64,000 nucleotides of DNA, from the sequence record OQ411014.1; one strand, given 5' to 3'. Both the position numbers and the translations under genes were made by a program. The notes under the pieces are model-generated. The model was not told the DNA's origin, did not search any database, and was given only the letters and a program-made list of their open reading frames with translations. Position 1 is the stretch's first letter; each line of letters starts with the position of its first letter. Of this stretch, positions 1,887-45,903 are shown one piece after another.

Positions 1887-2363
1887 ATGTTCGAATTTGA
1901 AGAAGAGATTTATTTTGATCCTTCTGAAGATGGCTATACACACCTAAATGCGTATAGTAAAGGACGTACACGTTTGGGGAGGATGCTATCTAATTTTGCA
2001 TACTCCCCATTTGTGTTTGAGCCGTATGGTCACTTCAAATCGATGGAAGGATTCTGGTACTGGTACTGTACTGGTCAGAAGCATGATATTCTAAGAACCC
2101 TAAGTGGGGCGAAGGCCAAAGCTGAAGGCCAGAAGTTTCCTAGAGTGATTACATCAATGTCCGATGAAGATATCAGTACTATTCAAGATGCTATGGTAGC
2201 GAAGATAGTACAGAATAGTGAAATCAAAGATGCGTTGATGAAGTGTAATCTTGAGATAGTTCATTACTATGTATATGCAGGTAGGGTTGTACGATTAGAC
2301 CAGAAAGATGATTGGTTCGCAGAAACGCTGAACATGATTCGTGATGCATTACAGGGTAAATGA
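1887..2363 (+). CDS. NADAR-like protein (T4 gp30.3-like ADP-ribose hydrolase fold)
   Basis: LSNFAYSPF...F.SMEGFW and LSGAKAKAEG resemble T4 gp30.3 LSNFAQWPF...F..LEGFL and LSGLAAQQAG. Confidence 0.6.
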   Translation: MFEFEEEIYFDPSEDGYTHLNAYSKGRTRLGRMLSNFAYSPFVFEPYGHFKSMEGFWYWYCTGQKHDILRTLSGAKAKAEGQKFPRVITSMSDEDISTIQDAMVAKIVQNSEIKDALMKCNLEIVHYYVYAGRVVRLDQKDDWFAETLNMIRDALQGK

Positions 2364-2389
2364 GATGAAATGAAAAATTGTGATATAAT
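2360..2389 (+). promoter_or_regulatory. class II promoter ATGAGA-18-TATAAT with TGTGA
   Basis: Same architecture at 7 sites in the window. Confidence 0.75.
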
Positions 2390-2395
2390 CCTAAT

Positions 2396-2905
2396 ACAAT
2401 ACCAGTCCTTCGGGCGATACGTTCCCAGATTCGAAAAGTAGATGATGGATGAGCATGATGGTACATGCGAGTGCAGAGATACCCGTACGCGGCGTTTACG
2501 GCACGTTAAAGGAGCTTTTAGGCAGATAGGCTCCCTAGATAGGTAAACTGAAGGTCAACTTCACCATAATGCTAAGGGAGGCTCATATGAGCCACATGTA
2601 CGTTTGATCGAATAGACTGTACATGAAGTGGGCTAAGACCCCGACCGTTGCACATGACTGTGATAGAGAGAAACAGAGCAACCCGCTTTCGTTTCCTGAC
2701 CATTTTAGTACGGGTAAGTTGTATCTAAAATTCAGGAAAATTCACAATTCGATAATTCCGATGCTACCAGCGTCAGATTTAACATCCCCCCGTGGGGGAT
2801 GAAAATACCTCATCAAACCTCGTCAGGATATAAAGTACTAAAAGTGAATTGAGTTACGATAGTAACGAAAATTCTTTGACAATCGTAAGATTGGCGAATC
2901 AGAAC
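2396..2905 (+). ncRNA. large structured ncRNA, copy 1 (ROOL/GOLLD size class; family unassigned)
   Basis: No credible ORF; own promoter; many stems; blocks of 30/34, 21/22 and 32/36 nt identity to 45085-45640 in the same order. Confidence 0.8.
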
Positions 2906-2930
2906 CTTTACAACAATACAGGAATGAAGT

Positions 2931-3167
2931 ATGATAACAGCAATATGTGAAATGGCTGACCAAGCCAGTGGTATAAAAGATGTTAGATTGATAGAAAACA
3001 CATTACAAGCTATGCAAGATTATGAAGACTATTGTGATGATCAGATCATGTGTGGTTTGGGTTTTTGTGTATATTTCTTTGATACCGAGAAAGATATGAA
3101 AGGCTGGTCAGAAGATGATGTATATGAGTTTATGCGTATTAACGCTCACTTGGAGATTGAAGTATGA
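2931..3167 (+). CDS. acidic hypothetical protein
   Basis: AGGA RBS; overlaps next gene (ATGA). Confidence 0.65.
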   Translation: MITAICEMADQASGIKDVRLIENTLQAMQDYEDYCDDQIMCGLGFCVYFFDTEKDMKGWSEDDVYEFMRINAHLEIEV

Positions 3168-4105
3168 CTGAACTAAACAGAGCTAAAGGAAGTCTAATTG
3201 GATTAGCAGTAGGTGATGCAGTTGGAACGACTTTAGAGTTCAAAGTACGTGATGTCAAAAACATCACCGATATGGTAGGTGGTGGTCCGTTTAACCTCGA
3301 CGTAGGCCAGTGGACTGATGACACTAGTATGGCTCTTTGTTTGGGTTATGCACTTTTGCAAAATCATAATGTCAATGATATTGTTGATAGTATCAAGTGG
3401 TCACAAGTACAATTAGACAACTATGTAAAATGGTACATGAACGGTTACTGTAGTTCTAATGGATATTGCTTCGATATCGGAAGTACTACTCAAAGTGCAT
3501 TGCGTGCTTATATGAAAGATGGTGTCATTCGTAACAACGATCATTTCTTGGATTCAGGTAATGGTAGTCTTATGCGTCTTGCTCCAATTGCATTGTACTA
3601 TAACGCAAAGAATGTAGAAGAGTTCACAACTCTAGTGTATGCTGCTGACCTAAGTAGTACTACTACACATGCCAGTACTTTATGCCGTGAATCTTGTGTT
3701 GCATTTTCAGTACTACTCAATCGTGCTATCAATGGTATCGACGATAAGACTAAACTACTTGACTTCCCACCATCACTATGGAACGGTTTGGTGTCAGAGA
3801 AGTTAGTACTGGATGTGTTGAACGGTTCGTATAAGAATAAGACTCGTGAACAAATTAGTTCAAGTGGGTATGTTATTGATAGCCTAGAAGCCGCTCTATG
3901 GGCCTTCTGGAACACCGATAACTTCCGTGACGCTATCCTATTGGCTGCTAACTTAGGCAACGATGCAGACACTGTAGCGGCGATTACAGGGCAGATTGCA
4001 GGTGCTTTCTATGGTCTTGATGGTATCCCTGATGAATGGGTACAGAAGATTACAGCCACAGATGAAATCCAACAACTAGCTGAGGCTTTGTATAATGCAA
4101 ATTGA
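3164..4105 (+). CDS. ADP-ribosylglycohydrolase (ARH/DraG family)
   Basis: GLAVGDAVG, GQWTDDTSM, GNGSLMRLAP and LGNDADTVAAITGQIAGA motifs. Confidence 0.92.
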   Translation: MTELNRAKGSLIGLAVGDAVGTTLEFKVRDVKNITDMVGGGPFNLDVGQWTDDTSMALCLGYALLQNHNVNDIVDSIKWSQVQLDNYVKWYMNGYCSSNGYCFDIGSTTQSALRAYMKDGVIRNNDHFLDSGNGSLMRLAPIALYYNAKNVEEFTTLVYAADLSSTTTHASTLCRESCVAFSVLLNRAINGIDDKTKLLDFPPSLWNGLVSEKLVLDVLNGSYKNKTREQISSSGYVIDSLEAALWAFWNTDNFRDAILLAANLGNDADTVAAITGQIAGAFYGLDGIPDEWVQKITATDEIQQLAEALYNAN

Positions 4106-19101: not shown

Positions 19102-19191
19102 AGAAGGTTGGCAGAGCGGCTAAATGCACTCGCCTACTAAGCGAGCACTCGCTCCGGCGAGTCGAGGGTTCGAATCCCCCACCTTCTGCCA
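19102..19191 (+). tRNA. tRNA-Ser(ACT), unusual A34 anticodon
   Basis: agaaggt/accttct, ctcgc-ct-act-aa-gcgag, long variable arm actcgc/gcgagt, G73-CCA. Confidence 0.88.
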
Positions 19192-44693: not shown

Positions 44694-45023
44694 ATGAAGA
44701 TGGAAGACTTAGTAGAACTATTACAGCCGTACGCTACAGTACTATTTTTGATTGCTTCAATGTATACTGTTGTAACTCTAGTACTTGGATTCTTCAAGTA
44801 TCGAACACTAGCTAAACGCTTAGACGAGAACTTATGGCTCTCTGTTCCTAGTATCTTTAGTGTAGCTATTAGTATTGCAAACTATTTTATTGAAGATCGT
44901 ATGTTCGCTGCTATTATGTTATTATTTGTTTTGGTTGGGGTAACATTTGTAGGTACTATCTATGCAATGTGTAAAGGATTTGTGTACGTTCGTTCCAAGA
45001 TACCAGATCCAGAACAAGAATAA
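44694..45023 (+). CDS. 3-TM membrane protein
   Basis: Three TM segments, ends RSKIPDPEQE. Confidence 0.7.
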   Translation: MKMEDLVELLQPYATVLFLIASMYTVVTLVLGFFKYRTLAKRLDENLWLSVPSIFSVAISIANYFIEDRMFAAIMLLFVLVGVTFVGTIYAMCKGFVYVRSKIPDPEQE

Positions 45024-45031
45024 TTCTAATT

Positions 45032-45074
45032 AATGCTCACTTCGGTGAGCATTTTTTTTATTTTGTGATATAAT
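45032..45074 (+). promoter_or_regulatory. UUCG terminator whose 3' arm supplies the -35 of a class II promoter (GTGAGC-18-TATAAT)
   Basis: aatgctcac-ttcg-gtgagcatt, T-tract, tgtga-tataat. Confidence 0.8.
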
Positions 45075-45084
45075 TAAGCTATAA

Positions 45085-45640
45085 TCTCGATTAACCATTA
45101 TGGTATAAAGAAACCTAATCCACTCGAAAATGTAGAGGGTAGATGAGTTGAGTAATCGCAACGAAGTGCAAATGAAACCCGTTAGGTGAAGGCATAGTTA
45201 GTACCTCCCACGGCGACGCGGCACTATAAATGAGCATGGTAAGATGATATTGCTCACTCGATAGACGTATAGGATGAACACCTACCAAATATCTAAGGGA
45301 GTTCATCAAAAAGGCTGGCTATAGATCCGTCCAGAATTTGATGAACACAGTACTGAATTGACTGTATAGTTCAGTACTGAAGTGTAGTAAGACTACGACC
45401 GTTGCAGAACAGAGATAGGGAGAAACAGGGCAACCCGCTTCCGTATCGTAAGATAATTCTCTATACAGTACTCCGATGCTATCAGCGTCAGATTGTCGTC
45501 CCTCCCTTGTGGGGGGATGAAATTTCCTCAACAAATCTCGTCAGGATTGATTCAGTACTATTGATATTAAATGAATATTCAGTTATGATACGAAGTATCT
45601 AACGAATACCAGACTTCTCATAAGAGAAGGATGTGATGAC
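45085..45640 (+). ncRNA. large structured ncRNA, copy 2
   Basis: No credible ORF; own promoter; colinear conserved blocks and covarying stems relative to 2396-2905. Confidence 0.8.
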
Positions 45641-45654
45641 CCAAAGGAGATATA

Positions 45655-45903
45655 ATGAAGATTTTCAAATTTATTGCTGCTTCAGTACTAGCACTTTCCC
45701 TAAGTGCGTGTGATCGCGTAACAGAAGAACGTTCGCATGAGTTCGCACTTCCTTCTGAGTTAGTTCAAGCAGGATGTAAGATTTATCGTATGCGAGCTGA
45801 AAGTGGTGTAACTCTATATGCTTTGTATTGTCCTAATTCCACAACCACAACAAGCTACACCAGTGGTAAACAAACTCATCATGTCACTACGTACAGTAAC
45901 TAA
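45655..45903 (+). CDS. small lipoprotein
   Basis: Lipobox LSAC; AGGAG RBS. Confidence 0.8.
   Translation: MKIFKFIAASVLALSLSACDRVTEERSHEFALPSELVQAGCKIYRMRAESGVTLYALYCPNSTTTTSYTSGKQTHHVTTYSN

Follow-up and report, generated by a model that had tools for sequence, protein, structure and literature searches.

Positions 2396 to 2900 (+) of the DNA analysed here (the window: 64,000 nt, corresponding to genome positions 248001-312000, + strand, of Escherichia phage EJP2, OQ411014.1; Asteriusvirus, 349,185 bp) are occupied by a structured RNA gene, designated copy C. Judging from sequence comparison, we consider it probable, at roughly 0.6, that this element is one of five paralogous genes for noncoding RNAs of ~500-700 nt, whose products would act in trans as folded particles, alone or with a host factor. 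An earlier note on this DNA had described a large, highly structured noncoding RNA with its own promoter, either a remote ROOL relative or a new class, and the covariation among 47 diverged homologues strongly supports such an RNA, of a new class. The note also called the element one of two paralogs, which holds for the window only; the EJP2 genome has five. The family is distinctive in retaining five paralogues per genome across genera and in its spread to chromosomal islands. It is also tractable, with culturable phages of E. coli, Salmonella, Klebsiella, Cronobacter, Serratia, Yersinia, and Erwinia and a covariation-supported model that includes four pseudoknots.

Copy C and the other EJP2 paralogues

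Copy C lies in a region (2364-2930) between two + strand ORFs and was recognised by nhmmer, by covariance model (CM) matches, and by covariation; its MFE z-score is -3.06. As the earlier note had read it, a promoter stands directly ahead of the RNA, with TTGTGATATAAT at 2378-2389 in copy C and at 45063-45074 in copy D. The copy C promoter matches at 10 of 12 positions, and the TG is present. From this promoter the RNA is expected to start near A2396, and from the last conserved hairpin its 3' end is expected near 2898-2900, where the earlier note had 2905. The features in and around copy C are as follows.

2360-2389, +: promoter of copy C, with a -35-like ATGAGA (2360-2365), an 18-nt spacer, and an extended -10 element TGTGATATAAT (2379-2389)
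2396-2900, +: RNA of paralogue class C, with the H1 leader hairpin (2405-2415), the core (2418-2828), and the 3' domain (2846-2898)
2421-2592, +: 5' half of the core (pair statistics from the homologue alignment)
2421-2448, +: H2, degenerate in copy C
2448-2453, +: GAUGAG
2453-2455/2466-2468, +: H3
2471-2474/2501-2505, +: H4, enclosing H4b (2483-2486/2490-2492)
2495-2498/2544-2546, +: PK1, 3/3 pairs with compensatory change
2511-2515/2530-2534, +: H5
2522-2524/2570-2572, +: PK2, 3/3 pairs covary
2549-2551/2560-2562, +: H6
2572-2580, +: invariant CUAAGGGAG
2579-2592, +: H7 hairpin
2594-2828, +: 3' half of the core, with the conserved tail GGAUGAAAAUACCUCAUCAAACCUCGUCAGG to 2828
2594-2605/2614-2625, +: H8, with its loop at 2607-2613
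2607-2613 (AUCGAAU)/2747-2753 (AUUCGAU), +: PK3, pairing of the H8 loop
2630-2632/2640-2642, +: H9
2643-2645/2772-2774, +: GAC:GUC
2647-2651 (GUUGC)/2678-2682 (GCAAC), +: H10, pairing into the H12 loop
2659-2663/2742-2746, +: H11, 5/5 pairs covary
2666-2670/2686-2690, +: H12
2693-2695/2736-2738, +: H13, with an inserted hairpin
2785-2789/2794-2798, +: H15
2846-2898, +: 3' domain, with GAAUU (2846-2850) and AAUUC (2870-2874) around a hairpin (2854-2865)
2875-2898, +: terminal hairpin UUUGAC-AAUC-GUAA-GAUU-GGCGAA
2920-3167, +: RBS AGGAA (2920-2924) and a 78-aa ORF (2931-3167), 3' of copy C

Copy C is the most diverged of the EJP2 copies; it has a poorly formed H2, and one bulge shifts its H8. 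Its pseudoknots are all intact, and PK1 is fully recoded to a variant of its own (UUA/UAA instead of AUG/CAU), and this shows that selection continues. In copy D, all consensus helices are formed, H8 (12/12) and PK3 (ACUGUAU 45361-45367 with AUACAGU 45463-45469, 7/7) among them. The CM R1, which was built on the sub-domain of the core 3' half, scores 111.5 bits at copy C and 111.2 bits at copy D.

A recount of the colinear blocks reported between the two copies gave the same identities as in the earlier note, i.e., 30 of 34 positions (2662-2695 and 45414-45447), 21 of 22 (2758-2779 and 45473-45494), and 32 of 36 (2794-2829 and 45512-45547), and the short words TCGAAAA, CGGCAC, CTAAGGGAG, and GACCGTTGCA are common to both copies in the same order. 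Within the window, the 21- and 22-nt core words are confined to copies C and D, with 0 expected from shuffles. The hairpins between the blocks are equivalent in both copies, as covariation shows. The proposed pairing of the RNA ends (GTTCCCAGATTCG at 2421-2433 with CGAATCAGAAC at 2895-2905) stood in part: it is present in copy C and in its MFE fold, but it is not conserved in orthologues. On the 5' side it takes up the 5' strand of H2, a helix of 5 bp that C-class orthologues form cleanly, and on the 3' side it shares nucleotides with the covarying terminal hairpin. Nor can the pairing form in the orthologues L017, L031, and L124. This end helix is specific to EJP2 copy C and competes with two conserved helices. 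A terminal closing helix in general, whether this one or some other P1-like pairing between leader and tail, was rejected, as the 44-sequence extended alignment contains no conserved stack of this kind.

The EJP2 genome contains exactly five copies, on which blastn, the nhmmer profile, and the covariance model agree. All are on the + strand, and each occupies a gap of 550-740 nt without annotated genes.

Genome 36.7-37.5 kb, +: copy A
Genome 90.7-91.4 kb, +: copy B
Genome 170.5-171.2 kb, +: copy E
Window 2396-2900, +: copy C, at ~250 kb of the genome
Window 45075-45630, +: copy D, at ~293 kb of the genome
Window 45032-45074, +: upstream region of copy D, an intrinsic terminator (45032-45053) and T-run followed by the promoter GTGAGC...TTGTGATATAAT (45063-45074)
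Window 45081-45630, +: RNA of paralogue class D, with the core at 45110-45550 and a 3' domain reaching to the hairpin CUUCUC-AUAA-GAGAAG (45614-45629)

The promoter (T/A)TGAG(A/C)-N18-TGTGATATAAT is common to all five copies, and most homologues, many of the bacterial ones among them, have a TGnTATAAT-type promoter upstream. Within the window, the promoter class (T/A)TGAG(A/C)-N18-(A/T)TGTGATATAAT is found at 2378, 6644, 8632, 16420, 28928, 32185, and 45063, where it drives both large RNAs, a tRNA-Thr (8682), a tRNA-Ser (16487), and three protein-coding units. No conserved protein neighbour was found among the five EJP2 loci. Each paralogue has its own PK3 heptamer, which is perfectly self-complementary; such private heptamers could, to judge from their sequences, prevent mispairing of co-expressed copies or specify assembly.

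The constant position of the element directly after a promoter would also suit a cis-acting leader on its own transcript, which might confer terminator resistance on RNA polymerase (cf. HK022 put), control downstream translation, or stabilise the mRNA. Of the five EJP2 copies, four are followed by a gene of the same orientation, and several copies have an internal hairpin and U-run before H15. A terminator-like hairpin within 330 nt downstream was observed in 13 of 95 copies, mainly of one paralogue class, and was absent in the other 82. Copy C runs straight into the RBS of the 78-aa ORF, and the same junction of RNA and RBS/ORF is found in the C-class orthologues L031 and L124; the number of terminator-like sites in 2200-3100 is 0, so read-through from copy C into this ORF is likely. 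The abutting RBS and the 82 copies without a terminator-like hairpin count against a trans-acting particle, and a cis role, or processing from a longer transcript, is therefore possible. On the other hand, the downstream genes vary among paralogue classes and between phages and islands, and the fold is retained in stand-alone and read-through copies alike. Class E is set between minus-strand genes, on which it converges, and the hairpin at its end also serves the converging gene. Moreover, a length of 500-700 nt, four pseudoknots, and ~70 invariant positions greatly exceed the need of any known cis antiterminator or thermometer. We regard a leader function as unlikely, although it carries some weight.

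The terminator-like hairpin and U-run inside the RNA just before H15 are seen in many copies, C and D not among them, with sites at L002 41151-41167 (EJP2 copy B) and L004 20927-20944 (copy E). The U-rich tract is retained even where the hairpin is lacking, and the site may serve as an attenuator, or the U-tract may be structural.

A further reading takes the five copies as marks of replication origins, at which the RNA would prime or open the DNA in the manner of ColE1 RNA II and the T4 origin transcripts. The copies lie scattered at 37, 91, 171, 250, and 293 kb; a strong promoter precedes each of them, and all have the + orientation. However, the GC skew tracks gene orientation, with no switch and no origin signal at the five loci, and the small chromosomal islands have a single copy beside an integrase. 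The covariation with G-U pairs also points to a folded free RNA and not to an R-loop, which makes origin transcripts very improbable.

Covariation and coding potential

The 81 full-length copies were reduced to 47 representatives of <95% identity (50-94% pairwise). In a first set of 26 sequences, RNAalifold predicted 72 pairs, 43 of which have compensatory double changes, and the long-range pairings and pseudoknots were found by mutual information without a prior and by an exhaustive stack search. The curated model consists of 88 pairs in ~20 helices, with four crossing (pseudoknot-type) interactions. In alignment A4 (47 sequences), these 88 pairs are 95.5% paired, as compared with 38-43% in controls in which the 3' partners were slid by 1-3 columns. 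The pairs were also tested for covariation among homologues, as the earlier note had suggested: 67 of the 88 show compensatory double changes, with a covariation score of 0.566 versus 0.08-0.10 in controls, and none of 500 shuffles reaches any of the measures.

In PK3, every nucleotide of the H8 loop is paired to a segment that lies 140 nt further 3'; all seven pairs covary, and 99.4% of the cells are paired. H10 is 100% paired and is invariant save for one covarying pair (CG 37, UA 8, AU 2). The G-U cells (285) outnumber the A-C cells (46), and the + strand is therefore the folded strand. The core is two-lobed, with ~70 invariant positions in junctions and loops, and the peripheral hairpins vary between paralogues. 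The 3' domain that follows the core, which consists of the GAAUU...AAUUC helix, an inner hairpin often with ACGNAGUGA, and the terminal hairpin, is kept in most homologues. The terminal hairpin covaries, with double changes in 7 of its 9 pairs and 49 double-change cells in the extended alignment.

Two candidate pairings were not accepted. The pairing of the conserved 5' leader motif ACAAYCCUG with the CAGGAU after CUCGUCA does not covary, since its 3' side varies (CAGG, CAGU, CAAG) and its 5' side is constant; the H14 hairpin GAUGC/GCGUC has two competing registers and aligns poorly, and it was left out of the model. A module GUAC-NN-UAUAG-NUN-CGUC flanked by UUUU/AAAA is an optional insert at two positions of the fold, in H7 (A4 columns ~320-345) and in H13 (A6 columns ~100-125; 2703-2722 in copy C), and its occurrence at two different places suggests a reusable tertiary-contact module.

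It is scarcely credible that the locus is no RNA gene at all but a DNA element in several copies, such as a MITE-like repeat or an array of protein-binding sites, or an overlooked small protein gene. The element is indeed a dispersed repeat, and several GenBank records of relatives (e.g., PQ464590.1, MK773491.1, and OR699181.1) place three to five "hypothetical proteins" over these RNA loci. However, owing to compensatory changes the homologues are 95.5% paired even at 50-60% sequence identity, the wobble pairs are strand-asymmetric, and neither terminal inverted repeats nor target duplications were seen. In agreement with the earlier note, which found no credible ORF, the longest + strand ORF inside the region has 59 aa. 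No reading frame on either strand is conserved among the 47 homologues, whose stop-free stretches differ in frame and place, and one conserved block (GCGGGUUGCYCUGUUUCUC) falls in any of the three frames, giving KRVALFLS, AGCPVS, or SGLPCF in different homologues. A small ORF from the AUG after H15 is in a frame common to four EJP2 copies, but this AUG is lost in many homologues, with AUC, AUA, AUU, or UAG in its place in several, and the candidate was rejected. So was a minus-strand ORF, for which 83% of the sequences have a stop-free stretch, but in three different frames. The pairing, frame, and wobble data effectively refute a DNA element or a protein gene. The "hypothetical proteins" are almost certainly spurious gene calls, and the annotation of many GenBank records is corrected accordingly.

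Comparison with known RNA families

At gathering thresholds, Rfam 15 identified six tRNAs in the whole window and nothing else. One of them, a tRNA-Ser with the unusual anticodon ACU according to ARAGORN (19102-19191), has the lowest Rfam score of the six, 47.9 bits. The Rfam search that the earlier note had proposed was also run with permissive filters at E<=10 on 2300-3000, 45000-45700, and 16 homologue loci, and no family was found over the element. Among the families without a match at this threshold are ROOL, GOLLD, OLE, raiA, RNase P, tmRNA, 6S, HEARO/omega RNA, and group I/II introns; the suggestion of a remote ROOL relative is thus not borne out for the two copies and the 16 loci. A full-text literature search returned no RNA described in the phage group of EJP2, and the EJP2 genome paper makes no mention of such an RNA.

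The family has the characteristics of ornate RNAs: its members exceed 400 nt, have numerous covarying helices and pseudoknots and no ORF, and are located in phages and prophages. As a class of large ornate RNA it is genuinely new, and it is nearest in kind, though not in ancestry, to ROOL (RF03087) and GOLLD (RF01998). It resembles these two in size (~500-800 nt), in its many helices and pseudoknots, in its occurrence in phages and integrated elements, in having its own promoters, and in the absence of an associated protein. The solved structures of ROOL and GOLLD are RNA-only homo-oligomeric cages (bioRxiv 10.1101/2024.12.08.627333); the EJP2 family gave no sequence or structure match to either covariance model at E<=10, and the sole hint of such an assembly in it is the self-complementary 7-nt PK3 code of each paralogue. 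ROOL and GOLLD belong to Firmicutes and to rumen or lake bacteria, whereas the hosts of the EJP2 family are Enterobacterales, and the EJP2 family comprises five diverged paralogues per genome that are kept across genera. We know of no such five-paralogue pattern for ROOL or GOLLD. The raiA motif and OLE, whose functions are at most partly known, are likewise large, conserved, and pseudoknotted noncoding RNAs. Unlike the EJP2 family, which is multicopy in phages and gave no match to their models, they are single-copy chromosomal genes of Gram-positive bacteria, and OLE has dedicated protein partners encoded nearby, of which none was found for the EJP2 family. ROOL, GOLLD, OLE, and raiA are among the least understood bacterial and phage products, and each new class has exposed a new RNA architecture.

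The dense invariant unpaired nucleotides and the pseudoknots recall large ribozymes, and the core might be a catalytic centre that processes its own transcript or acts on other RNAs (e.g., tRNA precursors), with paralogues that differ in substrate. EJP2 has tRNA genes, a CCA-adding enzyme, an RNA ligase, and a polynucleotide kinase. In addition, two colinear segments, ACGACCGUUGCA...GAGAAACAGAGCAACCCGC and GGAUGAAA...CAACAAAUCUCGUCA, resemble by eye, and in the same order, what we take to be the segments CCCACGACCAGUGCAACAGAGAGCAAACCGCC and AGAUGAAUGACUGUCCACGACAGAACCCGGCUUA of E. coli RNase P RNA (M1). However, the models of RNase P (RF00010/RF00011), group I/II introns, and small ribozymes gave no match at E<=10 at the 18 loci. 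Unlike in RNase P RNA (type A, RF00010), the look-alike segments pair locally (GUUGC/GCAAC), and the family lacks CR-I GGAAAGUCC and equivalents of P3/P2. The P4-like helix GAUGAG:CUCGUC is not maintained, being broken by one-sided changes in 7-14 of the 47 sequences (AC 9, AA 4, UU 7). The relationship was rejected, the resemblance to RNase P RNA is treated as coincidental, and a ribozyme is a doubtful reading of the family.

The HK022 put RNAs are likewise promoter-proximal and structured, and a phage genome has more than one of them. The EJP2 family differs from them (~70 nt, two stem-loops, acting in cis only) in being 7-10 times larger and in that one class is a stand-alone convergent unit. 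Noncoding RNAs have been defined by RNA-seq in a distantly related jumbo phage, PA5oct, a relative of the RaK2/121Q group: ncRNA001-004 are 236-619 nt in length, and two of them are highly expressed throughout infection (PMC7318152). ncRNA001, 002, and 004 were compared as possible homologues, and neither nhmmer --max nor CM detected similarity.

Distribution and possible function

By BLAST, the element is present in 62-72 phage records, at 2-5 places in each. Pattern scans and nhmmer gave five copies each in GAP32, CBB, BF, fHe-Yen9-04, and three uncultivated contigs of 355-371 kb; a pattern match in a 284-kb contig (L136) is inside a coding region and was dismissed as chance. In a tree of 55 copies, grouping is by paralogue class and not by genome. 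Classes A and B contain one copy from every genome with complete retrieval, EJP2 copies C, D, and E group with Asteriusvirus copies, and the non-Asteriusvirus genomes have three further classes with one copy each, one class with two extra copies. Since the classes cut across genomes, the multiplicity is old and has been maintained.

A two-block pattern matched nine bacterial contigs, all nine of which contain full-length homologues. The carriers are Buttiauxella, Silvania, Citrobacter amalonaticus, two Serratia (one a complete chromosome), Enterobacter chinensis, two Enterobacteriaceae, and one "Clostridium" MAG, which is probably mis-binned. At the bacterial loci, a gene for a large serine recombinase or tyrosine integrase lies shortly upstream of the RNA, and a CI/LexA-like repressor and a Ner-like gene are nearby. 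The RNA occurs in 2 of 5426 complete E. coli genomes, where it occupies an unannotated 1.4-kb gap of a ~10.7-kb island beside ffs. In E. coli LR-29-1 (L130; NZ_AP027515.1 3472.9-3483.6 kb), this ~10.7-kb island lies between ffs and ybaA and contains, besides the RNA, a tyrosine integrase disrupted by IS3 and a candidate defence system, PDC-M45 (DuOB, DUF488, mSLOG-DUF4326). The bacterial copies form three groups nested among the phage classes, which indicates exchange between phages and bacteria.

Proteins encoded at the nine bacterial loci (8 kb of flank per locus) were compared with EJP2 by tblastn. The one real match, an ADP-ribosylglycohydrolase at a single locus, is incidental, and for these nine loci a protein partner shared by islands and phage was rejected. 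The phage protein (PF03747, E=6e-66) is encoded at 3164-4105 of the window, two genes downstream of copy C; the bacterial homologue, with 27% identity over 331 aa, is 4.4 kb from the RNA in locus L054. The presence of this gene beside the RNA in both may be a coincidence.

In the preferred reading, i.e., a trans-acting folded particle, the RNA would be transcribed by the host sigma-70 RNA polymerase from the extended -10 promoter. Action in trans is suggested because class E is a stand-alone convergent unit and because the fold is the same whatever lies downstream. The RNA may work on its own, by RNA-only assembly or catalysis, or may engage an Enterobacterales host factor, because the family occurs both in ~350-kb lytic jumbo phages and on ~10-kb integrative islands, and the nine bacterial loci compared share no protein gene with EJP2 except for the one match. 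A role with a host factor would most plausibly be in phage-host conflict, to which the presence on mobile islands ties the RNA. The five paralogues would be non-redundant, each with a specificity of its own or all in joint action, because at least two classes are represented once per genome among the genomes with complete retrieval. The earlier suggestion that several diverged copies reflect specialisation or hetero-oligomers is strengthened in this respect, since the retention of five paralogues across genera argues for division of labour or RNA co-assembly.

A more speculative extension, to which we assign a low likelihood, is that each of the five classes supplies a different subunit to a single hetero-oligomeric RNA machine (a large ribozyme or an RNA-only assembly), which jumbo phages would use to take over or shield a host process; the single-copy form of the islands would then be homomeric or interfering. 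Five chains of ~0.5-0.7 kb would share a common core and would be distinguished by class-specific peripheral hairpins and by private pseudoknot "addresses". To our knowledge, there is no natural RNA assembly of five components.

Guide-like antisense targets were also considered in the EJP2 genome and rejected: the sole matches are AGTACT-rich stems, and this motif is over-represented genome-wide. AGTACT occurs at 3.76/kb, as compared with ~0.33 expected from base composition (~11-fold), and is not specific to the RNA loci; GTAC is ~2.8-fold enriched, also genome-wide. AGTACT might be a modification or regulatory motif. Elsewhere in the genome, at 318.6-335.6 kb (L006 6571-23572), ~14 paralogous minus-strand genes of ~370-460 aa, annotated as RCC1/BNR-like ("GTPase regulator"), form a run in which the GC skew is strongly negative.
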